Made by a program: the position numbers and the translations under genes
Sequence record: PP496443.1
Length of the DNA: 64,000 nucleotides
Reading direction: 5' to 3' (one strand)
Notes under the pieces: model-generated
What the model saw: only the letters and a program-made list of their open reading frames with translations
Databases searched by the model: none
Told to the model about the DNA's origin: nothing
Shown here: in pieces, positions 12,470 through 57,108 of the stretch
Numbering within the stretch: position 1 is the stretch's first letter
How the letters are laid out: each line of letters opens with the position of its first letter

Positions 12470-12794
12470 TACCGCCTCCGGATACTGACTCGATGGCAAT
12501 GATCTCTGCACCGATGAGCAGGCTCTTCAGCCATTCTTCACCACGTTCCTCTTCGTCCTCGATTCGGACGTCTCCCATCATAATGAATGGGCAGTCATTG
12601 TGCGTCTCGAGCTTGTCAAAGACTGTGTTTACGGCGGCGTCGATAACATCCCAGCCAGTACAATTGCCGCCGATCTTCACTTCCATGACGGCGCGAAGCA
12701 ATCCCGATGCGAAGGTCAATATAACGGTTTGGGTAACCTTGCCGCCGAACATTGCGAGAAAAGATCCGAGCTGTTCGTGATCATAGTTCAACAT
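12450..12794 (-). CDS. Hypothetical acidic protein (114 aa)
   Basis: ORF coupled to the GNAT gene stop. Confidence 0.6.
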   Translation of the reverse strand: MLNYDHEQLGSFLAMFGGKVTQTVILTFASGLLRAVMEVKIGGNCTGWDVIDAAVNTVFDKLETHNDCPFIMMGDVRIEDEEERGEEWLKSLLIGAEIIAIESVSGGGNVNQGS

Positions 12795-13618
12795 TAGTCT
12801 GTCCTCTTGATATTACCGGGTAGGGTGTAGGACCACGGCTTGACATAATCTGCCGGGCGGGTGTAGCCTATCAGGTCTTCACCTTCGTAGGGGCCGTGCT
12901 TCCACGGGTCAGTAATCTCTGCGCGTTCAAACCCGATGGACTCGTATAGCTTGATCGCACCTTCGTTGTCCGGGTCCACGTTGAGATGGTGGGGCAAACC
13001 TTGGGTCAGTTCCCAAGACAGCAGGAATTCTAGCATGCCTGTGGCAACACCGCGACGGCGGTAATCAGGGTCAACGCTGATCTCCTTGACAAAGCACGCG
13101 TCCACCTTCTCGCTGTCCTCGTCTTCTTTGAACATCACAACGTCCATCAGCCCAACGACCTTGTTGTGCGCGGTCACGGTCACCCGTACCTCTTCCTGAT
13201 CCGGCATATCCCCGCTCCAGCCATTCCATCGGGCCATGGTCACCGTGTACAGATGGTGTTGCCCGTCGTGCTTGGGGCCGTGCACCTGATGCAGTGCACG
13301 TGCATTCTTCAACTCCATCTTGGCGCCGGGCTTGATGACCGGGAATTCCAGATGCTTGATTTCCTTTTCAAGCATGATACCAATCTCGGAGTCTTTCGCT
13401 TTCTTGTCTTTGATGGTGGCTCGGTACACTGTGTCTGTGTCCGTGTTGTAAACACCCACCTTATCCGTCATCACCGTAATAGACGGCACAGCGGACCAGA
13501 TGTACTCTTTGCAATGAGCTTTATCCGGGAATGCGAAGCCAACGGACTTGCCGTCTACAATGACCAGCCACGGGCAATGGCCGGGATGCGGAAACCGAAG
13601 GATCTTTTGTGTGGGCAT
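12794..13618 (-). CDS. GNAT (RimI-like) acetyltransferase with N-terminal extension
   Basis: EISVDPDYRRRGVATGML (acetyl-CoA motif A) and VDPDNEGAIKLYESIGF (motif B). Confidence 0.85.
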   Translation of the reverse strand: MPTQKILRFPHPGHCPWLVIVDGKSVGFAFPDKAHCKEYIWSAVPSITVMTDKVGVYNTDTDTVYRATIKDKKAKDSEIGIMLEKEIKHLEFPVIKPGAKMELKNARALHQVHGPKHDGQHHLYTVTMARWNGWSGDMPDQEEVRVTVTAHNKVVGLMDVVMFKEDEDSEKVDACFVKEISVDPDYRRRGVATGMLEFLLSWELTQGLPHHLNVDPDNEGAIKLYESIGFERAEITDPWKHGPYEGEDLIGYTRPADYVKPWSYTLPGNIKRTD

Positions 13619-19748: not shown

Positions 19749-21227
19749 ATGAAATCTGTAGCCGTTGACTACCAAAAGATAGCCAAGGAATGCCAGTGTA
19801 CCGAGCTGCCTTCTAAGGTAAGAGTTACGCGTGCACGGGTCTATCCAAACTTGAGGACGTGTCTACTCTTCCTCAAGTACGATGCCAAAGGTGAACTGGT
19901 ACAAGCCGAGATCACTGCGCCGTACGACACGTCCACTGAGCCAAAGGTGAGGGTGCTCAAGCACCCGGATAAGAAGTCCGACTTCCTTTCATTATATAGA
20001 GCGCTGATCCGCCACCAGATCATACCCGAGTCTATTCCGAAGAAAGGTAACGGGATTGCACCAACGCTGGAGGTCATCGGCACACTGGTGAGCCTGCTGC
20101 CGGAACGGGATGTCGAAACCTTCCGTACGCTGACCCCGGCCATCCAGACGGGCAGCGTCATGTACGTCCCTCTGGTTACGTCCCGGCCAATGCCCATGGT
20201 GCAACACTGGATACCCGTTGACCAGCATTCAGAGCTGGGCATGATCGAGCTGGTCGATACGGATAGCAAGCCTTTCCTTAATCAGTGGGTCAACAGGTTG
20301 AGCAACACCGCCACCGGTTATGTGATCTACACCCCGGAAGGCTCACACGGTCAGGAACTCGCCTGCTTCCGGGTGCCCAATGTACAAGGGGAGGAACTGT
20401 GTGTGGTCAAGAAGGTTGACTTCACCCTGACTGTTGCTCGCACACTCAAGCCGGTACTGACTGTATCCACCAAGAGTACTCGGGCAGTGTCCCGCATTCC
20501 CCTACCCCACTATCTGATGCTGCGCAATCACCACATCAAGGTGGGCACGGTTATTTCCCTGCGTCGTAACGACCGAGGTGGGTTGGTGTACCATGAGACG
20601 GTGGCCGAGGAAGGCATGACGCCCCTGCCGCTGTGTCCACACTGCCACAGTGGTTCTGTGCTGCGAGGTAGTAGCAATGACGTGTACTGCAATAACGATT
20701 CATGCCGAGGCCTAGCCATTGTGCGACTTCGTTATGTCTTGAACAACAAGCTGGACGTCAAGTACCTGAGCGACAATAAGGTAACAGCGCTGATCAATGA
20801 CAAGCAGGACCTGTTCAGCTTGCTTAAGACACCGACGCACCAGTTACGGCACAGACCTGGCTTTGGTGCACGTACCGTGGACGCACTGGAGGAGAAGCTT
20901 AACACTATTGCCGGTCTTCCACTGCACACACTGGCCGAGATGTCCTGCGCTTTCTACAACGTGGGCGTGCCCCCACTGGATGAGATGGTGTTCAAGAAGA
21001 TCTTTTCCGTTATGTCGATTGACTACCTGAAAGCGCTGCCGTCTACCGGCAAGATGTACAGTCAGCTGCTCGACATCGAAGGTATCCGCAACAACCGCGC
21101 AGTGGCTTTCCTTGCCGGCTGGCCTGCATTTCAACAGTGGATGATAGACCTGAACGCTGCCCTACAGTCTCGTAGCGCAATCTCCTCCACGGTAAATAAC
21201 CCGAAACAAATTCGAGGTGTGAAATGA
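19749..21227 (+). CDS. Catalytically degenerate NAD-dependent DNA ligase (LigA) homolog
   Basis: OB-fold, Zn finger (CPHC...YCNNDSC) and HhH repeats (GFGARTVDAL, IEGIRNNRA) retained; adenylation motifs substituted (KxDG->PNLRT, EVRGE->EVIGT, DGVVIK->TGYVIY); no BRCT. Start re-placed at ATG 19749. Confidence 0.75.
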   Translation: MKSVAVDYQKIAKECQCTELPSKVRVTRARVYPNLRTCLLFLKYDAKGELVQAEITAPYDTSTEPKVRVLKHPDKKSDFLSLYRALIRHQIIPESIPKKGNGIAPTLEVIGTLVSLLPERDVETFRTLTPAIQTGSVMYVPLVTSRPMPMVQHWIPVDQHSELGMIELVDTDSKPFLNQWVNRLSNTATGYVIYTPEGSHGQELACFRVPNVQGEELCVVKKVDFTLTVARTLKPVLTVSTKSTRAVSRIPLPHYLMLRNHHIKVGTVISLRRNDRGGLVYHETVAEEGMTPLPLCPHCHSGSVLRGSSNDVYCNNDSCRGLAIVRLRYVLNNKLDVKYLSDNKVTALINDKQDLFSLLKTPTHQLRHRPGFGARTVDALEEKLNTIAGLPLHTLAEMSCAFYNVGVPPLDEMVFKKIFSVMSIDYLKALPSTGKMYSQLLDIEGIRNNRAVAFLAGWPAFQQWMIDLNAALQSRSAISSTVNNPKQIRGVK

Positions 21228-21988
21228 ACAATCAAAACAGAACTCGTATCGCTGTGCTTGTCGGCGGCGGTCTGGACTCACATGCGTACATGGTATTGAA
21301 AGCCGACCAGCCTCAGACAGACTTCATTCATGTGGACTACGGCCAGCGGGTTGCAGTAGCCGAGAGAAACGCCGTGTTGCAAATGGCTGAGAAGCTGGGC
21401 ATTGCCCGCAGCCGGGTGTACACGCTGATCTGCAACAAGAAGAATCACATGCGCAAGGTCAATGACGGTGTGGGTGTGTTGTTTGGCACCGGCCCGGTCG
21501 AGATGGACAATGCGTTTGTTAAGGGGCGTAACCTGTTCCTGATTCAGAAGGCCATCGAGCTGGGCTACGGTCACGTGCACTTGACGCTGACCCAAGAGCG
21601 TGGCCGGATGTTCCCCGATGCCGATCTGGCATTCGTCCAGCTGGTTGACAACCTGATGCACCGCAGTTATGACGTGAGGGTATCCGCCCCCTACATCATG
21701 GAAGACAAGCATCGGGTGATGTTCAAGGCGTATCGGCATTGCCCCGAGTTCCTCGATATGTCTTTCACGTGCTGGGTAGGTCCTTATGTGGAATGTGGCA
21801 CGTGCCCGCACTGCGTCAAGAAGGAAAAGATTCGAGCCGAGATGATCGTTGAGAAGATTGAATACGATCTCAGCAAGGATGAACGTGAGGCGCAGTGGGA
21901 GCAAGTCAAGGCAGGCTACGGCGACGCGTTGAAGCCCGCTGAGACCATCAACATGAACATTCAGGTTGTTGACGGGGAAATGAAATGA
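21224..21988 (+). CDS. queC: QueC-like ATP-pyrophosphatase (paralog 1)
   Basis: GGGLDS PP-loop, VDYGQR, FVKGRN, FPDAD, SFTCW...CGTCPHC zinc site. Confidence 0.8.
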   Translation: MNNQNRTRIAVLVGGGLDSHAYMVLKADQPQTDFIHVDYGQRVAVAERNAVLQMAEKLGIARSRVYTLICNKKNHMRKVNDGVGVLFGTGPVEMDNAFVKGRNLFLIQKAIELGYGHVHLTLTQERGRMFPDADLAFVQLVDNLMHRSYDVRVSAPYIMEDKHRVMFKAYRHCPEFLDMSFTCWVGPYVECGTCPHCVKKEKIRAEMIVEKIEYDLSKDEREAQWEQVKAGYGDALKPAETINMNIQVVDGEMK

Positions 21989-22746
21989 ACAAGTTCTTAT
22001 GTTGGTTCAATCGTCTGCTGGGTAAGGAGCAAAAGGCGGTAACGATGACAATGACCGACGCCAGTGGCAAGTTGGTCACCATTCATATACCTAAAGGTGC
22101 CGGGGTTGAGTACACCTTGTCGAAGTCGGGTGCCCACTTGAACGTCTCGGTCAAGGACGACATCTTCGTATTGAGCACGAACGGTGCTGGAGGCGGTGGG
22201 GGTGGCCGCGGTAGATCCAAACCTGGTGGCCCCGGCCATCCGCCCGTGCATCCGCGCCAAACCGTCCCAGTGGGTCCAGGCGCCCCGAACATGGGTTGCG
22301 CTGGGGACGCACCGAGTGGAGCAGGTGTAACGTCGCCAGTGGGCGCTCAAGCTTCGTTCCCTATCGGTGCCCGAGCCACTGTTTCTAGTGGTGGCCGCGT
22401 TGGTGGTCTGGCGGGTGACGGACGGGAACACAGAGAACTAGGAGGTGCACCCGGTCCCGGCGGAGATAGCTTCGTTCCCTCTCCAATCCGTAGTAGTGAC
22501 CGAGCCTATCGCATCCGCGGTCTGTACTACGTCATTACGACTCGAAAGCTTACAGGTGAGGAGTACCCGACCCACGAACTTCTGCACTGGGGCCTTCGAG
22601 ACATAGAACTCATGGGCAAGTTCTCAACGGTCCGTGAAGCTATCGACGAACTCAAGAGTAAGCTGGGTATCGTGTTAGACGATATTACGGACTATCAGGT
22701 TGACTCCATTCCCAAACGGATGTGCAAACCACCGCACAAATCTTGA
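21985..22746 (+). CDS. Gly/Pro-rich low-complexity protein
   Basis: 253 aa with GAGGGGGGRGRSKPGGPGHPP and further GP/GA repeats between folded termini; ATGA-coupled to QueC-1. Confidence 0.65.
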   Translation: MNKFLCWFNRLLGKEQKAVTMTMTDASGKLVTIHIPKGAGVEYTLSKSGAHLNVSVKDDIFVLSTNGAGGGGGGRGRSKPGGPGHPPVHPRQTVPVGPGAPNMGCAGDAPSGAGVTSPVGAQASFPIGARATVSSGGRVGGLAGDGREHRELGGAPGPGGDSFVPSPIRSSDRAYRIRGLYYVITTRKLTGEEYPTHELLHWGLRDIELMGKFSTVREAIDELKSKLGIVLDDITDYQVDSIPKRMCKPPHKS

Positions 22747-22750
22747 GCGG

Positions 22751-22757
22751 GTAAATG
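22751..22757 (+). promoter_or_regulatory. GTAAATR box
   Basis: GTAAATG, 28 bp before the QueC-2 start. Confidence 0.55.
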
Positions 22758-22784
22758 GCTCGCAACTAATCCGGAGACACTAGC

Positions 22785-23603
22785 ATGACCACTACACCCC
22801 CTAAGATTATCGTCGCATTCAGCGCTGGCACAGATTCAACCACAGCGGCCTATTACTATCGCAAGCTCGGGTATCAGGTTACGCTGGCTGTCTTCGATGA
22901 TGGCCCCTGCAACGATCCAAAGGATCCTCTGTACGATCCTAACAAGCCGGAAGATCTTACCAATTTCTCCGACGAGTTCTACGATTACGTACGAATCCAT
23001 CAAGAACACACTGAGGGTCACCTGCAGTTCGACTTTGTGGAGATCCGTTACCCACAGCTCCCGTTGTTGGAAGCCAACAAGACGGCTAAACCTGGTCGGG
23101 ACAACGCGGCGGCAGCCGAAGCTGACGGCTTGGGGTTCTGGGTAGGCTTCAAAGGTCTGATGGCGATGATGCTGATGAGCCACGGCGCGGCCAACGGTTA
23201 CGAGGCTGTAGTCTTCGGCCACATGCCGTACAACAACCATTACGAAGATGAGCTGCCGCAGAACTTCGAGCTGCTGCGCCAGTACATGGTTACGGCCTAT
23301 GGCAGCCGAGTGGAAATTCCTCAGATCTACCACCCGTTCTATCGACCGAATTTCGATACCAAGGAAAAGGTTATTGAGCTGGCGCAGGCAATCGGCGTGC
23401 CCTTGCGAGATACCTATTCGTGCCGCCGAGGTGAAGTAGAAACCCGAGGTATCCTATTGCCACTTCTGCGTGGTGGTAAATCCAACTACGTGAGCCCCAC
23501 CTACCGCTGGAAGCATTGTGGTACGTGTGAGAACTGTGTCGAACGCAAGCGAGCCTTCGCGGCGCTGGGCATGAAAGATCCTGCCCCTTATATGGAACAT
23601 TGA
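22785..23603 (+). CDS. QueC-like ATP-pyrophosphatase (paralog 2, divergent)
   Basis: AFSAGTDS PP-loop, TKEKVI, DTYSC...HCGTCENCVERKRAF...DPAPY; lacks the YGQ and PxRN motifs. Confidence 0.75.
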   Translation: MTTTPPKIIVAFSAGTDSTTAAYYYRKLGYQVTLAVFDDGPCNDPKDPLYDPNKPEDLTNFSDEFYDYVRIHQEHTEGHLQFDFVEIRYPQLPLLEANKTAKPGRDNAAAAEADGLGFWVGFKGLMAMMLMSHGAANGYEAVVFGHMPYNNHYEDELPQNFELLRQYMVTAYGSRVEIPQIYHPFYRPNFDTKEKVIELAQAIGVPLRDTYSCRRGEVETRGILLPLLRGGKSNYVSPTYRWKHCGTCENCVERKRAFAALGMKDPAPYMEH

Positions 23604-23604
23604 T

Positions 23605-24594
23605 ATGGCCCTTTCAACCTGGCCGCTGACCGAAGGTGAACTCGGTCAGGGCCTCGTCAACGAACTGAATCGTACCAGCAAGGCGCTGGTGAACCGGAGT
23701 ATGTGGTCTTTGCCATTGCTCCGGCGTTTGTTTTATCGGCGCACCGAGATTGGTGTCCCGGAGCTACTCCACGTCTGTACCAGCATTCATCGGGGCAAGA
23801 CTTACTTCTGCCTGTTGGTGAACTTCCGAGACGTGGTGATGGGCAATCCCGACCAGTATGGCTGGGATCTGGCGGGCCGCTGGTTGTTCTACGACGTTGA
23901 CCTGCTGGACACCCCGCCGTTCAAAGCGGTGAAGAAGTCCATTGAGTCCCGTGCCACCAAGACCGAAGTGTCGTACGGTCAGGCTTTCCTCCCTTACGAG
24001 AAGAGCGATGAGGAATACGTCAAGTCCCTCAAGGGCAACTACAAGCCCCACATCTTCGGCGAGAAGTCCAAGCAGTATCGCGTCTTATCGTACTTCGGGC
24101 TGGCAGCGGTAGCCCCCTTCGCTCAAGCTCTGATGTGCTTCGGCATTCAGCGCGCCGAAAGGTTTATGGCCGAAGGGCAGAACGATGTCCTCCCCGAGTT
24201 GTACGACCTGCCACTGCAACTGGCGGGGCTCGGCAATGTCTCGAACACCCGCATCGGCTGCGTGACCATTGAAGTAGAAGGTACGATGGTAGGTGCTATC
24301 AGCATGTATGCTCAAGGTGCACTGGGCGACGCGGACATGCTGTATCTGCACGAGATCCTCATCGACCCGGACCCCAAGTGGAAGAGCTTGTCGCTGGCTA
24401 CTCTGCTGCACATTCATGCCGTCCTGTACTATCGCCGATCCCTCCAGAAAGACATAGTGTTCAACCTGGGCTATAACTTCGCCGATGGGTATCAAGGTTA
24501 CAAGGATGTCTTCCGTCCCAACGCCAACGCCTTCAACGTGTACACCGAGATGGACACCGAGCCCGGCGTACCACTGTCCTGTTTCAAGGGGTAA
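23605..24594 (+). CDS. Fem/BioF2-type GNAT-fold transferase 1
   Basis: C-terminal VGAISM...LYLHEILID...SLATLL...FNLG...YQGYKDVF pattern of Fem-like GNATs. Confidence 0.6.
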   Translation: MALSTWPLTEGELGQGLVNELNRTSKALVNRSMWSLPLLRRLFYRRTEIGVPELLHVCTSIHRGKTYFCLLVNFRDVVMGNPDQYGWDLAGRWLFYDVDLLDTPPFKAVKKSIESRATKTEVSYGQAFLPYEKSDEEYVKSLKGNYKPHIFGEKSKQYRVLSYFGLAAVAPFAQALMCFGIQRAERFMAEGQNDVLPELYDLPLQLAGLGNVSNTRIGCVTIEVEGTMVGAISMYAQGALGDADMLYLHEILIDPDPKWKSLSLATLLHIHAVLYYRRSLQKDIVFNLGYNFADGYQGYKDVFRPNANAFNVYTEMDTEPGVPLSCFKG

Positions 24595-24597
24595 GAC

Positions 24598-25599
24598 ATG
24601 TACACTCCGTATTCCCAAAACAGCCTTATGCAGTCGATCCCTCTGGATGACCAAGGTACATTCGCCCATCCACCGTACACGATGGAAGGAGAGTTCACCG
24701 ACGTGTGGACGAATCCCAGCCTGTACGGGTTTGTTAGCTTGTTGAACGGTCAGAGCAATAGCCGGGCATATCGAGACTGGATGACCACCCACAATCTTCC
24801 AGCCCTGTTCCTCGGTCCGCACCATGAAGACAACTTCTGGTTTGAATTCAGCACTGGTCTCGATTCCAACTGCACGCTGGATTACAACGAGATCAACGTC
24901 CAAGGCAACCTGCAGGACTTCCTTGGGAGATTGACGTCATCTCGCCGTCGCTCCGTGCTCAAGGCAAAGGAAACGGATACAATGATCCACAAGGCAGGCT
25001 CGGTAGCCAACTTCAACCTGTATCATCCGGTAGAGGGTAGGCTGTATAGTCTGACCGTGATTCACGAACGCCGGGTGATGAAAGATATTTCCGAGTTTAT
25101 CGAATCGAAACTCTGGAGTATGAAGCATACGCCTACTGACCTCACGTACGGTGCATTCACCACTCTGATGGACTACATCCGGTTGAAGCAGCGAGATGAC
25201 ACGCCGCTGGGCCACCGGTTGCGCAACGTACAGCTCTTGATTATCCGAGATGAACGCTCCGGGTTTATCGTGTCGGTACACCTGGTGGCGATCAACACGT
25301 TGAAAGATGAGTCCATGAACCCCATCAAGACGTACATGCACTCCTTCGCACGCATCACTGTTCTCCCTGCACGTATCGCCTTACTTGCGTTGATCAAGGC
25401 GGTTCAAGAGTTAAACGTCACCAGTCAGTATGCGTCCCGTGCACTGGCGAAGATCGACTATCTTGATGTGAGCAACGTGGTGCTGTCCGAGCGAGAGCAG
25501 TACAAGTCGGACTTCTTCACCGGCAAATGCCAAGTGCGTGCGTGGGCATCCCCGGCGCTGCTGGAACGGCAGTTACCTTTCGTTACGCCGATCCCGTAA
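24598..25599 (+). CDS. Fem/BioF2-type GNAT-fold transferase 2
   Basis: LQDFLGRLTSSRRRSVLKA helix motif, FIVSVHLV strand, YLDVS...EQYKSDF terminal motif. Confidence 0.6.
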   Translation: MYTPYSQNSLMQSIPLDDQGTFAHPPYTMEGEFTDVWTNPSLYGFVSLLNGQSNSRAYRDWMTTHNLPALFLGPHHEDNFWFEFSTGLDSNCTLDYNEINVQGNLQDFLGRLTSSRRRSVLKAKETDTMIHKAGSVANFNLYHPVEGRLYSLTVIHERRVMKDISEFIESKLWSMKHTPTDLTYGAFTTLMDYIRLKQRDDTPLGHRLRNVQLLIIRDERSGFIVSVHLVAINTLKDESMNPIKTYMHSFARITVLPARIALLALIKAVQELNVTSQYASRALAKIDYLDVSNVVLSEREQYKSDFFTGKCQVRAWASPALLERQLPFVTPIP

Positions 25600-25603
25600 C
25601 TCT

Positions 25604-25610
25604 GTAAATG
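25604..25610 (+). promoter_or_regulatory. GTAAATR box followed by a start-codon-sequestering hairpin
   Basis: GTAAATG, then ATGGGAAC (25611-25618) complementary to GTTCCCAT (25648-25655), which covers the ATG at 25654. Confidence 0.55.
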
Positions 25611-25653
25611 ATGGGAACAGCCCCACCATCACTTCATCTCTAGGGTAGTTCCC

Positions 25654-26706
25654 ATGCAAGACTTCGATAAGATAATGATCGATAGTAGTTTGACATCCAA
25701 TCTGGTGTACGCAGGGTTGGGTAACTTGATCACGCCCCGCGCACTTGACCTGCTGATCGAACATCAGGCTGCACTGGAAAACGTATACGCCAATCTGGAA
25801 ACGGCCTATCAGATTACCCCACCCTTCCCCTGTGAAGCTGCATTCAATTCCCCTGACAAAGATCCTGTGCTGGTCGCCGACTATCTGAATGCTACTCCCG
25901 CCATCCGTTGCGGAGAGCTGGCTGGATTCGAGGCAAAGCCCGGCAGTTACTACCATGCGCCCGCCGCTGGTATCTCCCCGGAACATCGCATCGACGTACG
26001 TGGTATGTCTTTGCGTGAGTTCGACCACTATCTGGTTGAGCGTAAGGAGGTATCCCGTATCACTACCAATCTGGTGGCCGACAAGTTCCGCTGTGAGACG
26101 CATGTGTACAAAGTGGATGAAGATCATATCCTGATCCATGACGCCGAACGAGTTGGGATCAGCCAGACGGACTTCCGCCGCATGTGGGCGCAGACCCGCC
26201 GCCGGGAAATCGCTGAAAACTATCTGCAGTACATGCCCATCGAAGACTCCGCCAAGGATGATCAGGTGGTGCGCCTGATCAACGAAGACGTAGCACGGGT
26301 GTTCGCCCAGAACGTCGACTACGACCGCATGATTCCGCCCGAGCTGATCTTCGATGGTCAGGGCAAGCCGGTGCTGACCGTGCTGAAAGATTGCAACGCC
26401 AAGGTGTTGGGCATTGGTGTGTACGTCATCTACAAGTCAGCTGACCCAGAGAATGACAGCGAACTGCACTGGCGTGGCGCTTTCTACGATCACGAAGATC
26501 CTCGCGTAGCATCCATGGGCATTGAACACGCTCTGGTTGCCAGCGCACTGCATACAGCGTACGCCTGCAACGCGGTCCTCTATCTGACCAAGGCACCTAA
26601 GTCCGTGTGCGACGCATGGAAGACGGAAGTGCACCAAGGTTACGGTCTGGTCCGTAATGCGATGCCGGAACTGTCTGACACCCCTTACATTCTGGCTATC
26701 CAGTAA
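25654..26706 (+). CDS. GNAT-fold transferase-like protein 3
   Basis: VLGIGVYV...LHWRGAFYD...SMGIEHALVASALHTA...LYL...WK resembles the Fem-like GNAT C-terminal half. Confidence 0.5.
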   Translation: MQDFDKIMIDSSLTSNLVYAGLGNLITPRALDLLIEHQAALENVYANLETAYQITPPFPCEAAFNSPDKDPVLVADYLNATPAIRCGELAGFEAKPGSYYHAPAAGISPEHRIDVRGMSLREFDHYLVERKEVSRITTNLVADKFRCETHVYKVDEDHILIHDAERVGISQTDFRRMWAQTRRREIAENYLQYMPIEDSAKDDQVVRLINEDVARVFAQNVDYDRMIPPELIFDGQGKPVLTVLKDCNAKVLGIGVYVIYKSADPENDSELHWRGAFYDHEDPRVASMGIEHALVASALHTAYACNAVLYLTKAPKSVCDAWKTEVHQGYGLVRNAMPELSDTPYILAIQ

Positions 26707-26719
26707 ATAGCCGGTAACT
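26703..26719 (+). promoter_or_regulatory. GTAAATR box (extended copy)
   Basis: GTAAATAGCCGGTAACT, 16/17 identical to GTAAATAGCCGGTGACT at 55744. Confidence 0.6.
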
Positions 26720-26739
26720 CCATCCATTGAGGTACTTCC

Positions 26740-28824
26740 ATGAAATCCGTGAACCCCATCTTCAAGCACGTTCCCCAGTTCGACTGGCCTGTCATTCCCC
26801 GTGCGCAGTGGGAAGAGATCATCAAGGGAAAAGAGCATGTTATGTTCGACTCCTTCTCGCAGCTCGCTCAAGTGTTGGCTATCCCGGTGAGCAGTTACCA
26901 GTTCTACTTCGAAGATGGGTCCACGTTGTTCGCCGGTCCCGAAGCAACCTTCACCGCCGCGCCGTACCCGCTGTATCAGGACCTTGAATTCGTCCTGACC
27001 CCTGACGAGACGTTGGTACCGGGTCTTGCACTGGATACCAAACCGTGGGGCCTGTACACCGACGAATGGGTGGACAACTACGAAGGTGCGGACAAGGAAG
27101 ACATCGGCAACAAGACCGGGTTCGAATTCATTCCGCTGTCGGACGCCTTGAAACTGGTGGTCCTCAACACGGAGACCATGCAGCTCCAGTACACTGCCAT
27201 CGAGAGCTTCACGTACGACGGCGTGACTTACGTATACCTGCTGGCCGATGGCGTGTGCTGGGTACTGGCGGGCAAGTCCGGTGGTCTGGTTGCCAGCGAG
27301 CATGACAAAGGTGCTGCGTTCATCATGGTGTCCCATCCCGAGTTCGCCGGGTGCAGCGTAGACAACATGTACCCAAGTGAGTTCGGTGAAGCGGAAGCGA
27401 CGTTCTACGTTCAAGACGAGGAACACAATTACCTGGACGCGGCTAACCGCATCTTCGAGGAAGCCAAGGACGTAGGCGCTGGCACTTTCCTGACCATTGA
27501 GACCGGGGATGGACTGCCGACGGCACTGGCCTACAACCTGCGGTACAGTGACGTGGCCCACGTTAACCTGCCGATGCACAACATCCACCAGTTCACGTCT
27601 CTGCACGTACGACTGGGCGAGACGCCTAACTTCTCCGAGGCCCCGGAAGCGTGCCGTATGAAAGAGGTGATGGAGTATCTGGCGGACCCTGAGTCCCCGG
27701 TAGATCATTACTGGTCGGCCATCATGGTACTGGAGAAGAACTTCCCCGGTTTCGCCGACGCCCTGAAAGACTCCAGTGTCCCGACCCGTGACATCGTGCA
27801 CTCCAAACAGGCGTTCAGCTTGGAGATCGATCGCCAGTTCGGCAAGGAAGTGGCAAGCAAGATCGGCCTGAACACTGGCGTATTCGCCCAAGTGAAAGAC
27901 CGTGATGAGTGGCTGACCCGTCAAGACGATTTTCCTACCGACAAGGTGGCCGTTAAGTACAACACCAAACACTTCATCGGCATCTTCGACAAGGACGAGG
28001 TATCGAATTCCATCAACATGTGGCTGGCCGGTCAACCCGGAGAGTCGCTGATGATCGAAGAGTACTTCGGTGAGGGCAATCAGGAATTCAACCTGTGCTA
28101 TGTGATCAACGAAGAGTTCGTGCAGCCGACGCTGTTCCTGTGCGAAGTCAACAAGATCCTCGGTAATGACACCGGCGGCAAAGGTGGCAACACGCTGGCC
28201 TGCCATGATGCTCGTATTAACAAGTACCCTGAGTTCTTCGAGCCGGTCAATAATGCGCTTGCTAACCTGCATGAGCACGTGGAAGGTGTGAAGGGCTGGG
28301 TTGACCTGAGCTTCATGGTCCGCGACGGCATCCCTTACTTCACAGAGTGGTGCATTCGCATCGGCTGCTCCAACAACGCCACCATCGTGCGCCAGATGGA
28401 GACCCCGCTCGACGTTCTTTTGACTAACGTGGTTAACAAGGTGCATACCGAGCTGTCTTGGAAGCACTCCATGTCTGTTAGCGTGGACATCTACAGCATG
28501 CCGCTGTCCGCAGGCAATGATGCCAACATGCAGTTCACCGACTCGCTGACCACTCCGGTAGAGATGGTGTCCCCACTCAATCTGGAATTGGCAGCGGAGA
28601 GTTTCTTCGACCCGATTGATTCGGCCTGGAACGCGGTGTACGACGGCTACATTGTCGAGGCGTACAACCGATATGGCACCGTATCGGGGTATTCCACCAA
28701 CTGGAACTTCGCCTGCAATGCGGCGTACAATCACTTGAAAGATCAGTCGGTGTTGTACGGGGCATACCGCGAAGCGCCTGCCCACCACGACCCACTGACT
28801 CTGTTCCCTTTCCTCAAGGCGTAA
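26740..28824 (+). CDS. PurD-like ATP-grasp amide ligase with a long N-terminal extension
   Basis: EIDRQFGKEVASKIGLNT, VAVKYN, LMIEEYFGEGNQEF, NKILGNDTGGKGGNT, GWVDLSFM...FTEWCIRIG align with PurD ATP-grasp motifs; about 250 extra N-terminal aa. Confidence 0.75.
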   Translation: MKSVNPIFKHVPQFDWPVIPRAQWEEIIKGKEHVMFDSFSQLAQVLAIPVSSYQFYFEDGSTLFAGPEATFTAAPYPLYQDLEFVLTPDETLVPGLALDTKPWGLYTDEWVDNYEGADKEDIGNKTGFEFIPLSDALKLVVLNTETMQLQYTAIESFTYDGVTYVYLLADGVCWVLAGKSGGLVASEHDKGAAFIMVSHPEFAGCSVDNMYPSEFGEAEATFYVQDEEHNYLDAANRIFEEAKDVGAGTFLTIETGDGLPTALAYNLRYSDVAHVNLPMHNIHQFTSLHVRLGETPNFSEAPEACRMKEVMEYLADPESPVDHYWSAIMVLEKNFPGFADALKDSSVPTRDIVHSKQAFSLEIDRQFGKEVASKIGLNTGVFAQVKDRDEWLTRQDDFPTDKVAVKYNTKHFIGIFDKDEVSNSINMWLAGQPGESLMIEEYFGEGNQEFNLCYVINEEFVQPTLFLCEVNKILGNDTGGKGGNTLACHDARINKYPEFFEPVNNALANLHEHVEGVKGWVDLSFMVRDGIPYFTEWCIRIGCSNNATIVRQMETPLDVLLTNVVNKVHTELSWKHSMSVSVDIYSMPLSAGNDANMQFTDSLTTPVEMVSPLNLELAAESFFDPIDSAWNAVYDGYIVEAYNRYGTVSGYSTNWNFACNAAYNHLKDQSVLYGAYREAPAHHDPLTLFPFLKA

Positions 28825-28827
28825 TCC

Positions 28828-29991
28828 ATGAGCACTCCATTCCAAGAGTTCACCCTAGAAGGGTGGATTCGCTACATGAGAGATGAAAGCATCATCTGGC
28901 GCGCGTACGCTGATGGTCATCCGGATAAGGTCGAGTTCAGCCCGAAGTGGCGTGACGAGATGTATCGGTTGATGGTGCAGTTCAAAGATCTGCTGCCGAT
29001 GTCGTTTTCCAATCCGGTGTACGGCTTCACTGAAGGTTGGCTGGAAGGGCTCGGACTCCAGCCCTTTTATGGCGATGATCCGTTCAATCCGATGGTGCAA
29101 CCTCTTAGCCACCCTCTGGTGCATGTGGGGCTTCCGTTTACTCTGAGCGAGCTGACGGCGGGCGTATGGGACTGGCAGTCCCTGAGCGCGCACCTAGGGC
29201 GTCCGCTGCTGGTCGATACATTCGAACCGATCCCAGTGCCATCTATTAGCCTGGACGCTTACAAAGCCGTCCTGACCGTACGGGACCGGGAAGAGATCGT
29301 GATGAGTGCGGGAACCCCGGTGAACTACTTCCTCTGGTTGAATAGTCCGATCACCGAACTCAAAGACGACTTCGACGTTTATCTGGCCAGCCTGACGAAG
29401 AAGCGCCGCTACAAAGTGAAGCAGGCACTGGCGACAGTGGGCACCGAAGAGAACCCGGCTATCAGCGTCAGTACTGGATCTCGTTTCGGCGAAGGGTTGT
29501 TGTCCGATCAGGTGAACAGCATCCTCGCGACTTTCGAAGATCCGGTGGACATCGAGTGCATGCTTCTTCAGCTGCTGTTCGGGGTGGCAACCTGCAATAC
29601 CCATCCGCATCTTGTCGATCTGGTTTGTGCAGACCAGCAGTTGGGGATCTTCATCAAGCGTAACGGCCATACGATGAACTTCCTCTACAACCGTGACCCT
29701 GACAACCGCGCTGACTCAGGCATCAACCTGCTGACCCAGTACGTGCGCCATCTGCACATGAACCGCCCGGAAGGTGTGATGTACGTGGACCCGACATGTC
29801 GATATCGGCCTGACGAGGACAGTATGAACACCTACAAGCGGGTGATCACCAACGAGAACCGGTATCACCCAATGCCGTTCGTCTCGGCTGACCCTGCGCA
29901 TATCGAAGGTGTGATTACCCCGGCGTTCATTGCAGGTCATTGGCAGATGTCGGCGTCCAATGGCCCGGCCAATCCTGAGATGATGGAGTAA
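28828..29991 (+). CDS. Fem/BioF2-type GNAT-fold transferase 4
   Basis: DDFDVYLASLTKKRRYKVKQAL (typical BioF2/Fem motif), SGINLLTQYV, YVDPTC...TYKRVI. Confidence 0.65.
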   Translation: MSTPFQEFTLEGWIRYMRDESIIWRAYADGHPDKVEFSPKWRDEMYRLMVQFKDLLPMSFSNPVYGFTEGWLEGLGLQPFYGDDPFNPMVQPLSHPLVHVGLPFTLSELTAGVWDWQSLSAHLGRPLLVDTFEPIPVPSISLDAYKAVLTVRDREEIVMSAGTPVNYFLWLNSPITELKDDFDVYLASLTKKRRYKVKQALATVGTEENPAISVSTGSRFGEGLLSDQVNSILATFEDPVDIECMLLQLLFGVATCNTHPHLVDLVCADQQLGIFIKRNGHTMNFLYNRDPDNRADSGINLLTQYVRHLHMNRPEGVMYVDPTCRYRPDEDSMNTYKRVITNENRYHPMPFVSADPAHIEGVITPAFIAGHWQMSASNGPANPEMME

Positions 29992-29993
29992 CC

Positions 29994-30941
29994 ATGGCAA
30001 AGCACAAGGTCAAAAGGTTGGAAATCAACCACATCTACGACTTCTACCCGTTGTATCAGGTGATGTACGGGCGTGGCATGGAGACCAAAGCGTTCGAGGT
30101 CTCCAAGTTCGCCAAGATGGTGCTGGACTTCGAAGCATCAACCAGTACTCGCCGGAAGTGGGACGTGCTGGAACCTTTCAGCGGTATCAGCGAGCATGAA
30201 CACTTCTTCGCTGCTACTGGCCTGAACATCGAGCACTACACCGGCATGGACATCGTGGTTCCAGATGGGGCCAAAAACGTCATTCAAGGTGACATCATCA
30301 CCGACACCCTTCCGTTTCACGTCAACGCGGTGTTCGCCTTCTACTACAGCTTGCAGAATGTACGGGACGCCAAGACTGGCATGCACACGCGGGAAAAGCT
30401 GGTGGAGTTCTTCGACAACATCCTCGGCCATCTGCAAGTCAATGCGAACAAGAGCCGTATGCCCGCAGTGTTCGCTTTCCACCTTGACCAGCCTGAAGAC
30501 CCTAATTACTATCTGACGTCCCGTGCCGACGTTGGAGGTGAACAGTCATGGACCGCACCCGCGTGTGGTCTGCTGGGGCAGTGGGTCAAGTGCAAGCCTA
30601 CTGATACTCTGGAAGTGAAGTGCAATCTGGACACCTGGTACAACCGTGTGCAGTGCACCGCGTACGATCAGGCGGAGGATATCCAGATTCTGGTAAATGG
30701 GCGAGTAGTGGCTACCGTTGAGATCGAACAGCCGTTCACCCATCGGGTCTGGACCGAGCACGAGGTTATCGATATCCTGCGTGGTCTGGACTACAATCTG
30801 CACTTCCACATGTACAACGGCACCATCTCCAATTACGACTTCTTGATGACCCGTTTGGAAGACAAGCCCGTTCCCGGCGATGAAGAGGCTAATACTAATC
30901 AGATGACAACTGATATGCTGGTTGTCGTTAATCCGAGGTAA
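29994..30941 (+). CDS. Class I SAM-dependent methyltransferase-fold protein 1
   Basis: DVLEPFSG (motif I variant), YTGMDI, VIQGDI, VNAVFAFYYSL. Confidence 0.65.
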   Translation: MAKHKVKRLEINHIYDFYPLYQVMYGRGMETKAFEVSKFAKMVLDFEASTSTRRKWDVLEPFSGISEHEHFFAATGLNIEHYTGMDIVVPDGAKNVIQGDIITDTLPFHVNAVFAFYYSLQNVRDAKTGMHTREKLVEFFDNILGHLQVNANKSRMPAVFAFHLDQPEDPNYYLTSRADVGGEQSWTAPACGLLGQWVKCKPTDTLEVKCNLDTWYNRVQCTAYDQAEDIQILVNGRVVATVEIEQPFTHRVWTEHEVIDILRGLDYNLHFHMYNGTISNYDFLMTRLEDKPVPGDEEANTNQMTTDMLVVVNPR

Positions 30942-30943
30942 GA

Positions 30944-31861
30944 ATGGCTAAGCCCAAGATCCCTACACGAACCATCCCCACGTTGTACCAAGACTGGGGG
31001 TTGTACAGCGCCATCTGCGAACTGCCGCAGGAGACGATGCTGATGATGTCGCGCTTCGTGGCAGACCGGACTATAGAGCATGCTAATAGGCATGACATAG
31101 ATCGTGTGTCGATCATGGAACCTTTCAGTGGTCCTATCCCGTATTACGAACCTGATATCGACAGTTTCCTTACTAGAGCTGGCATAGGTTTAGACACGTA
31201 TGATCATGTGGAATACCTGGATCACGGCAAACTATCGGAAGACAACGGCATCATCATCGGTGACATCACCACCATCGATCTGAAGCAGAAGTACGACGTC
31301 ATCTACGGCAGTTACGGCAGCTTGGCCTGCCTGCTGCTGGATCAGACGCACAACAAAGCTTACGAGAAGTCGCACGCGGCGCTGGTCAACATCCGCAACC
31401 ACCTGAAACCCAACGGCATCTTCGTCCTGAACGCCAACGGATCCAGCGAAAGCCTGCTGAATAACCTGTTGAACTCCGATGAGCCGGATCAGGAGATTCG
31501 CGTCCGTCCGGGATCGCAGTTGGGTAAGGCGTTCCGAATCAAACCAGACAGTAACGCGCTGCTTCGCTTCACCTATCATGTGGAGTACGACCGGCGCACC
31601 ACCTGCACCATGTGCCACTACAGCGATATGGTGCTGTCTGTAAATGGAGTTGACATCCAGCGCTGGGAGGTGGAATCCCCGACGTATCTTGCGCCGCTGG
31701 ACGAACCCGAACTAATTCGAATGGCAGGTATGGCAGGTTTCAATCTGGACAACACTGAGTTTTACGGATTGGACACCACCGGTTATCCTGCCTTCTTCAA
31801 AATGGATACGGTCTGCGACGGGTCATGGTCACCCGCCGAGTTCGTAGTCTTTCGCACCTAA
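30944..31861 (+). CDS. Class I SAM-dependent methyltransferase-fold protein 2 (paralog)
   Basis: SIMEPFSG, IIIGDI, KYDVIYGSYGSL, NIRNHLKPNGIFVL. Confidence 0.75.
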   Translation: MAKPKIPTRTIPTLYQDWGLYSAICELPQETMLMMSRFVADRTIEHANRHDIDRVSIMEPFSGPIPYYEPDIDSFLTRAGIGLDTYDHVEYLDHGKLSEDNGIIIGDITTIDLKQKYDVIYGSYGSLACLLLDQTHNKAYEKSHAALVNIRNHLKPNGIFVLNANGSSESLLNNLLNSDEPDQEIRVRPGSQLGKAFRIKPDSNALLRFTYHVEYDRRTTCTMCHYSDMVLSVNGVDIQRWEVESPTYLAPLDEPELIRMAGMAGFNLDNTEFYGLDTTGYPAFFKMDTVCDGSWSPAEFVVFRT

Positions 31862-31871
31862 CGAGGTTACT

Positions 31872-33107
31872 ATGAGCGTTATCATCCCCACCGTAGCGAT
31901 GGAGAGTGGTCAGCCAGACATGATCATTCAAGGCTGTTCCACTGGTCGCGTCTCTATGGCCGAGCCTAACGAGAGCGCCAAACCTAAGTCTTCCAAGAAG
32001 CTGTACGAACGTGAAGACCTGATGGCGTACGACAGCGAGTCGGAGCACTGGCAGAAGCAGTTGGCCCGCCGCTACGCTCACCACGGTGAGATGGTCGGTG
32101 TGTTGAACAACGTCGAGGTGGTGCCGGAAGCCACCTATCAGAACTTCGACATGAAGATCACCCCGTACACCGCGCAGTTGATGGACCAGAACGACCCCAA
32201 CTGCCCGATCCGTTTGCAGTACATGCCGACCAACAAAGAGCTGGAGTCGATTCAGCGCGAAGAGACCATGCACAACGAGCTGGGCGAGGAAGAGGACACC
32301 ATCCCCGGTACCTCGGTCGTGCATCGCTACCCGCGTCGCGTCTTGTTCCTGACCACTACCCAATGCGCCAGCTTCTGCCGTTACTGCACCCGTGCACGCA
32401 TCGTCTCCCACGGCGGCGAAGCGGCGATCACCAAGAAGCACCTTGACGCCAGCATCGACTACATCGCCGGGAACAAGGACATCGAAGACGTGCTGCTGTC
32501 CGGCGGTGACCCGTTCATCCTCCCAGACAACAAGCTCGACGAGATCCTCGGTCGTATCCGTGCTGAAGCACCTCACGTTCGCTTCCTGCGTATTGGTAGC
32601 CGACTGCCGGTCCAGATGCCGACTCGTATCACTCCAGAGCTGTGCGAGATTCTGGAACGCCACAACGTCAACATGGTCAACATCCATGTGAACCACCCGA
32701 AAGAGGTTACCCCTCTGCTGGCCTCCCGGTTGAAGATGCTGCGTAAAGCGGGCGTCATGCTGGGCAATCAGGCGGTCCTGCTGAAAGGCGTGAACGACTC
32801 CATCGAGGTGATGACCGAGCTGTGCTTGCGCATGGTCGAGATGGGTGTGCGTCCGTACTACGTCTACTCCAACGATCCGGTTGCGCAGGCCGCACACTTC
32901 ACCGTCTCGCTCCGTGATATGCTGGACATCAACGAAGGCATGCGTGGCTTCCTGTCCGGCCCGGCAATGCCCACCTTCGTGGTGGATGGCGTCGGTGGCT
33001 TGGGCAAGATGCCCGTGCAGAAAGAGTACGTATCAATGCTGGGCAGTGGTAAGATCTGGGCCACCAACTTCGAAGGAATGACCACCCGCATGCCCCATCT
33101 GGAGTAA
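31872..33107 (+). CDS. kamA: KamA/EpmB-family radical SAM PLP-dependent aminomutase (lysine 2,3-aminomutase-like)
   Basis: HRYPRRVL, CASFCRYC (CxxxCxxC), LLSGGDP, RIGSRLPV, HVNHPKE, NQAVLLKGVND, PYY, PTFVVDGVGGLGK (PLP lysine). Confidence 0.93.
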   Translation: MSVIIPTVAMESGQPDMIIQGCSTGRVSMAEPNESAKPKSSKKLYEREDLMAYDSESEHWQKQLARRYAHHGEMVGVLNNVEVVPEATYQNFDMKITPYTAQLMDQNDPNCPIRLQYMPTNKELESIQREETMHNELGEEEDTIPGTSVVHRYPRRVLFLTTTQCASFCRYCTRARIVSHGGEAAITKKHLDASIDYIAGNKDIEDVLLSGGDPFILPDNKLDEILGRIRAEAPHVRFLRIGSRLPVQMPTRITPELCEILERHNVNMVNIHVNHPKEVTPLLASRLKMLRKAGVMLGNQAVLLKGVNDSIEVMTELCLRMVEMGVRPYYVYSNDPVAQAAHFTVSLRDMLDINEGMRGFLSGPAMPTFVVDGVGGLGKMPVQKEYVSMLGSGKIWATNFEGMTTRMPHLE

Positions 33108-56763: not shown

Positions 56764-57108
56764 ATGGATTCCTTTCAAGAGTGGTTCATTTACGACGTGA
56801 TGTTTTGGGTGACGACAGGTGCCATGTTACTCGTTGCCTTGATGAGCTTACTGGTGACACTGGTACTGGTCAAGATGGACCAGCGCATGGTAAATAAAGG
56901 TTACTGGAGTGCACCCCAAAATCGGGGTGATCCGGCCTTCCTGTGGTTCCACATAACCATGACCGTGATCTTCTTTCTCCTTGTCATCACGGACCTCATA
57001 AACGCCAGACTGTTCACTATCATCGGAACCATTGGGTACTGCGCTATCTCTATATACGCGCTGATCCTCAGGTTCCCCACGACTACCAACAAGGACACCC
57101 CGCAATGA
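56764..57108 (+). CDS. Three-TM membrane protein
   Basis: Three hydrophobic helices. Confidence 0.7.
   Translation: MDSFQEWFIYDVMFWVTTGAMLLVALMSLLVTLVLVKMDQRMVNKGYWSAPQNRGDPAFLWFHITMTVIFFLLVITDLINARLFTIIGTIGYCAISIYALILRFPTTTNKDTPQ

Follow-up and report, generated by a model that had tools for sequence, protein, structure and literature searches.

The terminal 64,000 bases of Pseudomonas phage vB_PpuM-Lauda (PP496443.1, 201,030 bp; the two sequences are identical), referred to here as the window, contain a run of eleven genes at positions 21224-33107. We propose, with a probability of roughly 0.6, that this cluster supplies the tailoring steps of a pathway by which guanine in the phage DNA gives way to a hypermodified 7-deazaguanine whose side chain derives from an amino acid and is probably cationic. 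Related clusters occur in distant phages; on the best reading, all of them jointly constitute a family of 7-deazaguanine DNA hypermodification pathways that is new and diversifying. Nine closely related P. putida phages of ~200 kb, Lauda among them, make up group G3 of the CEPEST collection; G3 phages gave very low DNA yields with a phage DNA kit, and KT2440 prophages restrict them more than 1000-fold (bioRxiv 10.1101/2024.03.26.586772). Positions in the Lauda record are converted to window positions by subtracting 137,030. The genes of the cluster, designated g1 to g11, are as follows.

g1, 21224-21988, + strand: QueC-family PP-loop ATPase with Cap9-like motif spacing
g2, 21985-22746, + strand: Gly/Pro-rich protein, hypervariable among sister phages
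g3, 22785-23603, + strand: strongly divergent QueC-family enzyme
g4, 23605-24594, + strand: candidate tandem-GNAT acyl/aminoacyl transferase of FemX-like architecture, hypervariable
g5, 24598-25599, + strand: orphan protein, possibly GNAT-like
g6, 25654-26706, + strand: protein conserved next to g7 in a related contig
g7, 26740-28824, + strand: PurD-like ATP-grasp protein (residues ~350-590) with an N-terminal region
g8, 28828-29991, + strand: predicted GNAT-fold protein resembling aminoacyl-tRNA-dependent transferases
g9, 29994-30941, + strand: paralog of g10, suggested methyltransferase
g10, 30944-31861, + strand: paralog of g9 with a weak methyltransferase-like signal
g11, 31872-33107, + strand: lysine 2,3-aminomutase of the KamA family

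The open reading frames lie exactly where a preliminary description of the window had placed them when it spoke of eleven contiguous same-strand genes with gaps of about 50 bp or less: there is one 4-bp overlap, and the gaps measure 1-54 bp. All eleven are annotated as coding sequences in PP496443.1, ten of them as 'hypothetical'. Comparison with phage Peetri (88% nucleotide identity) revealed an excess of third-codon-position divergence in every one, g2 included, and all eleven are therefore real genes. In a scan of the sequence, promoter- and terminator-like sites were no more frequent than in shuffled sequence. The surroundings of the cluster are replication genes, annotated in the record as ligase, topoisomerase II and helicase.

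By homology, the phage is predicted to cover the synthesis of 7-carboxy-7-deazaguanine (CDG), the synthesis of beta-lysine and a base-exchanging transglycosylase. The last of these and the genes for CDG lie outside the cluster, scattered through the Lauda genome and not in a single operon.

55790-56761, + strand: QueE-like radical SAM enzyme (CDG synthase step)
58730-59470, + strand: FolE, GTP cyclohydrolase I, first step of 7-deazaguanine synthesis
Record 80652-82022, outside the window: Lauda_00102, transglycosylase of the tRNA-guanine transglycosylase (TGT)/DpdA type
Outside the window: Lauda_00017, with a QueD/PTPS domain above cut-off

The QueE-like protein matches PHROG 2076 over its full length (1.3e-42) and contains a Fer4_12 domain, and FolE matches Pfam PF01227 at 3.8e-39, in agreement with the statement in the preliminary description that queE and folE lie elsewhere in the window. 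For the genome as a whole, 129 Lauda proteins were scanned against Pfam in two pooled sets (47 + 82). Lauda_00102 matched the TGT family at 4.6e-8 (32.9 bits; cut-off 26.3) and aligned with the archaeal TGT 1iq8 (1.5e-3), matching its DSGGFQ catalytic motif and its CxCxxC...HN zinc site (PCNCPVC, HN); its C-terminus is a long basic tail. The TGT fold, catalytic Asp motif and zinc site expected of a DpdA are thus all present, and DpdA-type proteins are regarded as a signature of 7-deazaguanine in phage DNA (PMC10516641). A tblastn search with Lauda_00102 at 1e-3 found none of the phages 9g, CAjan, nt-1, CP220 and phiST and returned only jumbo phages of the present group.

Relatives of the cluster are rare. 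Neither g7 nor its alignment retrieved any in scans of IMG/VR, JGI metagenomes and GTDB genomes, and those known were reached only by way of a protein index and of contigs from Logan/ENA. In the Vibrio phages GR7B and GR11A, a smaller version of the cluster occupies the equivalent place in the genome, between a LigA-like gene and topoisomerase II. Its order (ArcS2-like, canonical QueC, QueC-like, GNAT-like, g8-like, g7-like, KamA, small GNAT) differs from that in Lauda, and the gene set is reduced. Two Logan contigs, L009 and L008, keep g5-g6-g7-g8 and g7-g8-g9-g10, respectively, at 26-44% identity. L015, a 66-kb contig of 39% GC, contains a LigA-like gene, g1-, g3-, g4- and g5-like genes, three proteins with g8-like domains, a g9-like gene and topoisomerase II; its cluster has neither KamA nor ATP-grasp. 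Gene order is conserved across L008, L009 and L015 at 22-45% identity, and the cluster often sits between a LigA-like gene and topoisomerase II genes.

Two further variants differ more strongly in content. L012:1-11071 (ENA scaffold GROS21-1_SAMEA9560725_METAG-scaffold_22, 238,620 bp) holds in one run Gat-QueC, glycosyltransferase-like, GFO/IDH/MocA-like and spermidine-synthase-N-like genes, followed by FolE, DpdA-like, small GNAT, PurD-like and g8-like genes. The DpdA-like gene inside this cluster encodes 545 residues and is 31% identical to Lauda_00102. The run at L011:11724-21681 belongs to Xanthomonas phage PhiXhv-12 (PV764601.1) and recurs in PhiXhv-15/16, Ep026 and Erwinia Ep032 (~228 kb). 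It encodes a true Leu/Phe-tRNA protein transferase (PF03588, 2e-29), a 545-residue protein combining a g8-like domain with a C-terminal GNAT, ArcS2-like and g8-like proteins, a homolog of the Vibrio protein GR7B_00116, an LmbE-like deacetylase, a glycosyltransferase and a Gat-QueC wrongly annotated as GlmS. From this content, it is a candidate for a different deazaguanine hypermodification cluster. The ArcS2-like genes of the Vibrio and Xanthomonas phages carry a PCxxxKPY motif, and GR7B gene 119 matches DUF5591 (PF17884, 2e-6).

The DpdA subfamily of Lauda, as delimited by tblastn, comprises the nine P. putida phages, Vibrio GR7B/GR11A and the Xanthomonas/Erwinia phages of PhiXhv type, all of which carry QueC-family and g8-like genes; it also includes three more jumbo phages. 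Four phage lineages combine this DpdA subfamily with QueC-family and g8-like genes, and a fifth related contig is known in part. On these comparisons, the three are an apparently invariant trio, the remainder varying by lineage. The preliminary description had named synteny and co-occurrence with dpdA and queD as tests of its pathway, and both came out in its favor: cluster genes are linked, not unlinked, in distant relatives at 22-45% identity, QueC-family, g8-like and DpdA-like genes go together across lineages, and Lauda has a QueD domain.

The assignment of g11 is clear. The protein contains Radical_SAM, LAM_C and Fer4_12 domains, matches PDB 2A5H at 3.8e-80 over 318 residues and is 51% identical to KamA of the syntenic Vibrio cluster. 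In the alignment it keeps CxxxCxxC and the equivalents of D293, D330 and K337 (2A5H numbering); we take Lys337 to bind pyridoxal phosphate (PLP), and Asp293 and Asp330 to bind the epsilon-amine of lysine. g11 is likely the source of beta-lysine. Bacterial-looking entries aside, the only phages in the collection with KamA homologs were this P. putida group, its Vibrio relatives and three that are huge and uncultured. The homologs in LR756500.1 and LR756501.1 (462 kb and 735 kb) are 33-41% identical to the Lauda and Vibrio genes, and these two of the three, when checked, had no other cluster gene within 14 kb of KamA.

A small classical GNAT gene directly follows KamA in GR7B (L006:17579-18058) and GR11A (L007:17586-18053). 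In methanogens, ablA and ablB, a KamA-type gene and a GNAT gene, make N-epsilon-acetyl-beta-lysine. KamA of Lauda has no adjacent small GNAT; a GNAT gene is found instead at some distance, and may, with some uncertainty, be an accessory gene.

12794-13618, - strand: Lauda_00171, GNAT gene, annotated as an acetyltransferase

Compared with the small GNATs, Lauda_00171 showed 43% identity over 56 residues to that of L012 and a chance-level match (E 0.5) to that of the Vibrio cluster. Among the 47 Lauda proteins in the first scanned set, one matched Acetyltransf_1 at 5.6e-14.

The two QueC-family proteins depart from the canonical enzyme in ways that bear on its substrate. Canonical QueC is characterized by SGGxDS, YxQxHxxE, VPxRN, YPDC and the zinc motif C(x)8CxxCxxC, of which YxQxHxxE, VPxRN and YPDC are substrate motifs shown to be essential for QueC function; paralogs with remodeled substrate motifs (QatC), or with the Cap9 variant, join CDG to an amine of a protein and do not make preQ0 (2026 study, PMC13329287). 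g1 matches Pfam QueC (PF06508) at 7e-19 over almost its full length, and its sole match in the PDB is Cap9 (9nto_B, 2.6e-8). It carries GGGLDS, YGQ(x)5E (YGQRVAVAE), RN (VKGRN), FPDAxxxF (FPDADLAF) and PYx4K (PYIMEDK), together with a zinc cluster of the form C(x)7CxxCxxC. Set against the Cap9 signature of Y/FxQ(x)5E, RN, YxDCxxxF and PF(x)4K plus a zinc site, g1 comes close, with Cys replaced by Ala in FPDADLAF. g3 matches PF06508 at 2e-12 in its C-terminal half, has an N-terminal PP-loop (SAGTDS) and keeps the zinc cluster as C...CGTCENC with a long insert; in the alignment YxQxHxxE, VPxRN and YPDC are all missing, a search of the PDB returned no match, and its homolog in the L015 cluster is 45% identical.

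Both proteins thus retain the P-loop and zinc site of canonical QueC, and neither has its substrate motifs (in g1, YGQRVAVAE lacks the His, VKGRN stands for VPxRN and FPDA for YPDC). All three are present in the Vibrio phage gene GR7B_00118. Judged by these motifs, g1 and g3 should not be filed as canonical QueC, and g1 is a candidate ligase joining CDG to an amine, or else a candidate synthase of 7-amido-7-deazaguanine (ADG) or preQ0. PADLOC did not discriminate among the QueC-family genes.

In sequence comparisons, g8 is the apparent signature gene of this cluster family: its homologs adjoin QueC-family genes in the Vibrio and Xanthomonas phages, L012 and L015. An AlphaFold model built from a six-sequence alignment (predicted local distance difference test score, pLDDT, 55; predicted template modeling score 0.58) displays GNAT topology in its better half. 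For this poor model, Foldseek ranked first the aminoacyl-tRNA-dependent peptide synthase Sbb17 with streptothrisamine (9wqx and 9wqw; probability 1.0, best E 2.7e-3); MprF and aminoacyl-phosphatidylglycerol synthases came next, then Ate1 and ordinary GNATs. In the PDB, profiles built from the g8 and g9/g10 sequence families found only noise. The AlphaFold2 model of g4 (pLDDT 53) has two GNAT-like halves, and Foldseek returned GNATs only, including, over the full length of the model, the tandem proteins 2ozg and 2wpw and FemX (1xf8, 7z5y and 4ii9; best E 4.5e-4). A homolog of g4 is present in L015. None of g4, g5, g6 and g8 matched Pfam FemAB, Acetyltransf_6 or DUF2156, even at E 10; GR7B_00116 alone gave such a match (Acetyltransf_6, E 0.097). 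g5 shares with g8 the motif [FY]LxxLT(S/K)xxRRxVLK, which is all that hhalign aligns between them. A profile search with g5 through 1.84 billion representative proteins found only g5 itself and one relative, and its homologs in L009 and L015 keep the gene order. The homolog of g6 in L009 is 29% identical and is flanked by g5-like and g7-like genes.

For g7, the NCBIfam model TIGR00877 (purD) gave 2.4e-7 and 29.9 bits over residues 354-585 only, against an equivalog cut-off of 288 bits, and a g7 profile weakly matched PurD 2xcl with the E..R.G motif aligned. Homologs with 36-39% identity occur in the Vibrio phages and L008/L009, and the L012 gene in the equivalent position matches GARS_A and GARS_C. 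This weak but consistent evidence points to an ATP-grasp-like protein of PurD-related fold that is not a PurD ortholog.

The paralogy of g9 and g10 is clear (hhalign 98%), and g9 homologs occur in L008 and L015. For g10, Methyltransf_31 (E 0.033) and a daptide methyltransferase model (E 0.032) both scored far below their cut-offs; g9 and its L008/L015 homologs matched no methyltransferase in Pfam or NCBIfam. Comparison of g9/g10 with a single E. coli methyltransferase reached 5.9% at best, at the C-terminus and within the range of controls, and the motif LEPFSG...GDI..LP is visible by eye only.

The earlier assignments therefore fared unevenly. Two QueC-like genes, a KamA aminomutase and a PurD-like ATP-grasp protein had been described and were recovered, the aminomutase with its lysine- and PLP-binding residues intact and the ATP-grasp protein at a level far below the family cut-off. 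The four Fem/GNAT proteins were reduced to two, g8 and g4, since g5 and g6 yielded no family or fold evidence; the AlphaFold and Foldseek comparison proposed earlier placed g8 near Sbb17/MprF and g4 near tandem GNATs and FemX, in both cases from low-confidence models. The two methyltransferases were not upheld.

Three of these genes vary sharply among otherwise near-identical phages. Across the nine sister phages, g2 and g4 fall to 66-70% identity, and g8 to 88% in Illi-2, with neighboring genes mostly at 95-100%. g2 is 70% identical in Pori-4 and KoPa-5, compared with 95-100% for its flanking genes, and g4 shows 66-69% identity among phages that are elsewhere 97-100% identical. Such mosaic variation suggests recombination or diversifying selection acting on specificity components.

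A pathway can be proposed from these assignments. FolE, the QueD domain of Lauda_00017 and the QueE-like enzyme would produce CDG, g11 would convert L-lysine into beta-lysine, and Lauda_00102 would exchange the base in nucleic acid. g1 and g3 may adenylate the 7-carboxylate and join it to ammonia or, after the manner of Cap9 and QatC, to an amine, for instance beta-lysine; Cap9 and QatC both ligate CDG to amines (PMC13329287, PMC13279940). g7 could then form a further amide bond through an acyl-phosphate; g8 and g4, perhaps with g5 and g6, would transfer aminoacyl groups from host aminoacyl-tRNA onto free amines; and g9 and g10 are possible amine-capping enzymes. In the whole 201-kb genome ARAGORN detected neither tRNA nor tmRNA genes, and any aminoacyl-tRNA-dependent step would therefore draw on host tRNA. 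Tailoring of the free base and tailoring of DNA after insertion are both possible. In the Vibrio and Xanthomonas lineages, the ArcS2-like enzyme suggests an amidine linkage from preQ0, on which ArcS2 acts in phage DNA (PMC10516641). Because Lauda has neither ArcS2 nor canonical QueC, an amide derived from CDG is more likely there. The phage would likely benefit from protection of its DNA against nucleases and perhaps from charge neutralization.

This proposal keeps most of the assembly line sketched in the preliminary description, which had beta-lysine, aminoacyl and methyl groups being added to a 7-deazaguanine or other base in phage DNA: the DpdA-type enzyme, the KamA residues, the match of g8 to Sbb17 and the linkage of the genes speak for it, and a methyl step is possible. 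Searches of the full-text literature yielded nothing on these clusters and nothing on 7-deazaguanine-amino-acid conjugates in DNA, and the papers that mention the Vibrio phages contain nothing on DNA modification. The earlier remark that no phage pathway with this combination had been described agrees with the searchable full-text literature, where no matching description was found.

Comparison with known systems places the cluster between several of them. Phage 7-deazaguanine systems combine FolE, QueD, QueE and QueC with DpdA1-4 and yield dPreQ0, dADG, dG+, dPreQ1, mdPreQ1, fdPreQ1, dDG and dCDG (Hutinet 2019, Cui 2023). Lauda shares with them FolE, a QueD domain, a QueE-like enzyme, QueC-family proteins and a TGT/DpdA-type enzyme, and its Vibrio and Xanthomonas relatives add ArcS2-like (DUF5591) or Gat-QueC genes. 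In contrast to those systems, canonical QueC, QueF, ArcS2, DpdL, DpdM and DpdN went undetected in Lauda, its DpdA-like protein finds no classical DpdA phage by tblastn (1e-3), and seven to nine extra genes (KamA, ATP-grasp, GNAT-type and others) have no counterpart. Cap9 is the best solved relative of g1, which has a YxQ(x)5E / RN / YxDCxxxF-like / PFx4K pattern, and ATP-dependent coupling of CDG to an amine may be the common chemistry of g1 and Cap9/QatC. However, Cap9 and QatC serve bacterial defense (type IV of the cyclic oligonucleotide-based antiphage signaling system, CBASS, and QatABCD) by acting on a partner protein, whereas Lauda is a lytic phage whose genes stand beside amino-acid-handling enzymes, with a DpdA-type gene and without a CD-NTase or QatABD.

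For the tailoring enzymes, the aminoacyl-tRNA-dependent GNATs are the nearest comparison, namely Sbb17 of the streptothricin-related BD-12 pathway, FemX/FemABX and MprF. The g8 model leads to Sbb17 and MprF and the g4 model to tandem GNATs and FemX; at sequence level the Lauda proteins belong to none of these families. In the Xanthomonas version of the cluster, Leu/Phe-tRNA protein transferase is represented by a true member. Mom of phage Mu, which transfers glycine from Gly-tRNA to adenine N6 in double-stranded DNA (PMC13219725), is a GNAT-fold protein that uses a charged tRNA to hypermodify DNA after replication, the very step proposed for g8 and g4. Unlike them, Mom is a single enzyme acting on adenine without deazapurine chemistry, and no sequence similarity was detected.

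With its lysine-binding Asp pair and PLP lysine, g11 resembles KamA, the EpmB of EpmB-EpmA (beta-lysylation of elongation factor P), the AblA of AblA-AblB and the beta-lysine supply of streptothricin; the Vibrio succession of KamA and a small GNAT recalls AblA-AblB in particular. In contrast to EpmB-EpmA, no EpmA-like ligase is present, and the setting is one of QueC, ATP-grasp and GNAT genes in a phage. ArcS/RaSEA and phage ArcS2 would share with the proposed pathway the joining of an amino acid amine to the C7 substituent of a 7-deazaguanine in nucleic acid. Archaeosine synthesis reportedly proceeds via a preQ0-lysine adduct, described by Yokogawa et al. in 2019. In Lauda, unlike ArcS/RaSEA, the adduct would be kept and extended and not cleaved to an amidine, and DUF5591 is missing. 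By analogy, precedents exist for each kind of step that we infer: Cap9/QatC, ArcS/ArcS2, for small molecules Sbb17 and FemX, and for DNA Mom.

Several points weigh against the proposed pathway. The product is read from genes, and the CEPEST paper makes no mention of DNA modification (bioRxiv 10.1101/2024.03.26.586772). No QueF match was obtained among the 129 scanned proteins, ArcS2/DUF5591 had no tblastn match and no PC-x3-KPY motif anywhere in the Lauda genome, and a fully canonical QueC was not found in Lauda. The DpdA-like, QueD-domain, queE and folE genes are not adjacent to the cluster, and tRNA is in principle a conceivable substrate for an enzyme of the TGT fold. The structural models of g4 and g8 are of low confidence (pLDDT 53-55) with weak Foldseek E-values (4.5e-4 and 3e-3), and a preference for aminoacyl-tRNA over acyl-CoA is not readable from sequence. 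g2, g5 and g6 matched no family in Pfam, PHROG or NCBIfam, and hhalign of g9/g10 against a three-protein profile of E. coli UbiG, BioC and UbiE gave less than 1%, within controls.

The cluster might instead make a diffusible small molecule. This could be a streptothricin-like or peptidyl-nucleoside compound based on a 7-deazapurine; alternatively, counter-ions of the N-acetyl-beta-lysine type or resembling polyamines could be made to package DNA or to take over the host. Streptothricin-type natural-product pathways do employ enzymes of the KamA, ATP-grasp and aminoacyl-tRNA-dependent GNAT classes, g8 has Sbb17 bound to streptothrisamine as its best structural match, and the Vibrio gene pair of KamA and small GNAT resembles the ablA-ablB arrangement. 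Such a product is nevertheless unlikely, considering that the cluster and a DpdA-type transglycosylase co-occur across lineages, the latter even lying inside the cluster in L012, and that no exporter or resistance gene is present. Moreover, all studied phage 7-deazaguanine pathways end in DNA (PMC10516641).

Slightly less probable still is deazaguanylation of a protein or peptide, in which the QueC-family enzymes would place CDG on an N-terminus or a lysine, as Cap9/QatC do, that protein would also be the target of the GNAT, ATP-grasp and KamA enzymes, and g2 would be the substrate or carrier. It would account for Cap9 being the sole PDB match of g1, for the Cap9-type motif spacing, for the lack of canonical QueC substrate motifs in g3 and for a non-enzymatic-looking, hypervariable protein wedged between two QueC genes; a TGT-family protein, Cap10, is described as working with Cap9 on protein in type IV CBASS (10.1101/2025.04.06.647259). 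Against this, the Vibrio, L015, Xanthomonas and L012 clusters have QueC-family and g8-like genes but no g2, Lauda_00102 keeps its catalytic Asp motif and has the long basic tail expected for nucleic-acid binding, the cluster lies among genes for ligase, topoisomerase II and helicase, and no CD-NTase or QatABD-like partner was seen.

About equally improbable is that QueC-family and DpdA proteins produce only a known simple modification (dADG, dPreQ0, dCDG or dG+) and that g4-g11 are unrelated neighbors. QueC-family, DpdA, FolE, QueD and QueE proteins do constitute the known minimal set (PMC10516641), and several cluster genes have no assigned function. Chance neighborhood sits poorly, however, with the finding that in at least five lineages of otherwise differing surroundings g4-, g5-, g7-, g8- and g9-like genes, at 22-45% identity, adjoin those of the QueC family, with the tight packing of the genes at gaps of 1-54 bp, and with two QueC-family proteins in Lauda that both lack the full canonical signature.

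Modification of an archaeosine- or queuosine-like wobble or D-loop base in host or phage-used tRNA, with reprogrammed translation, is very improbable: the best PDB match of Lauda_00102 is an archaeal tRNA-guanine transglycosylase and archaeosine synthesis passes through a preQ0-lysine adduct (PMC10516641), but Lauda_00102 showed neither a PUA domain nor any other domain for tRNA binding, tRNA genes are missing from the phage, and every phage TGT homolog tested so far acts on DNA (PMC10516641). All four alternatives fit the cross-lineage linkage to a DpdA-type gene less well than does hypermodification of phage DNA.

Two neighboring genes were considered as pathway members and set aside.

19749-21227: g0 (Lauda_00184), 492 residues, its stop overlapping the start of g1; a CPHC...C..C zinc finger followed by a helix-hairpin-helix (HhH)-like region
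57105-58331, between the queE-like gene and folE: u231, sliding clamp (PHROG 947, 1.5e-6)

With its LigA-type zinc finger and HhH look, and its match to the OB_DNA_ligase gene lying before the QueC genes of L015, g0 was treated as a flank; on these features it is probably a degenerate NAD-ligase-like protein. u231 had been suspected of being DpdA from its position and proved to be a sliding clamp by its PHROG match. In the segment 55790-60061, a small membrane-like open reading frame, the clamp gene and a 129-residue open reading frame separate the queE-like gene from folE, amid DNA polymerase and helicase genes. Lauda_00069 was rejected as QueF, its motif match being at chance level and without Pfam support. 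Among the 82 small Lauda proteins scanned outside the window were weak matches to nucleoside 2-deoxyribosyltransferase (2e-3), YfbR-like 5'-deoxynucleotidase and HD_3 and a strong alginate lyase match (5e-39); the first of these could point to a nucleoside-level route to the modified base.

Two observations concern the flanks of related clusters. At L015:13785-17442, the gene for the topoisomerase II large subunit is split between its GyrB and Toprim parts by a reverse-strand gene with a Tn7 TnsA-like N-terminal domain and a DUF7487 domain. By the L012 cluster, at L012:11722-15513, a 1263-residue ribonucleotide reductase large subunit carries Hint/intein, LAGLIDADG and HNH signatures.

Taken on its gene content, the Lauda cluster is a strong candidate for new DNA chemistry. 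The eight known 7-deazaguanine derivatives of phage DNA all have small C7 substituents. If our proposal is true, coupling of beta-lysine or aminoacyl groups would bring a chemically new class to the natural modifications of DNA, tRNA-dependent modification of DNA would reach beyond Mom, and QueC-family ligases would gain a role outside defense systems. DNA of this kind may withstand restriction enzymes and CRISPR nucleases and give unusual results in purification and sequencing, which is relevant to work with P. putida phages, and the enzymes could serve as DNA-labeling tools. Seeking g8-like genes, QueC-family genes and this DpdA subfamily together provides a handle for finding more systems. 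Because g2, g4 and g8 vary sharply between near-identical phages, an arms race is suggested. More tentatively, and at odds that we put short of even, phages of ~200 kb and larger may carry a fast-diversifying 'hypermodification island', in which QueC ligases, KamA, ATP-grasp and aminoacyl-tRNA-dependent GNATs would build a peptide-like, beta-lysine-containing chain on C7 of the 7-deazaguanine in DNA. On that reading, no genome would previously have yielded a deazapurine conjugated to an amino acid or peptide, Mom would be joined by a second case of DNA modification by means of charged tRNA, and the side chain would be specific to each lineage.

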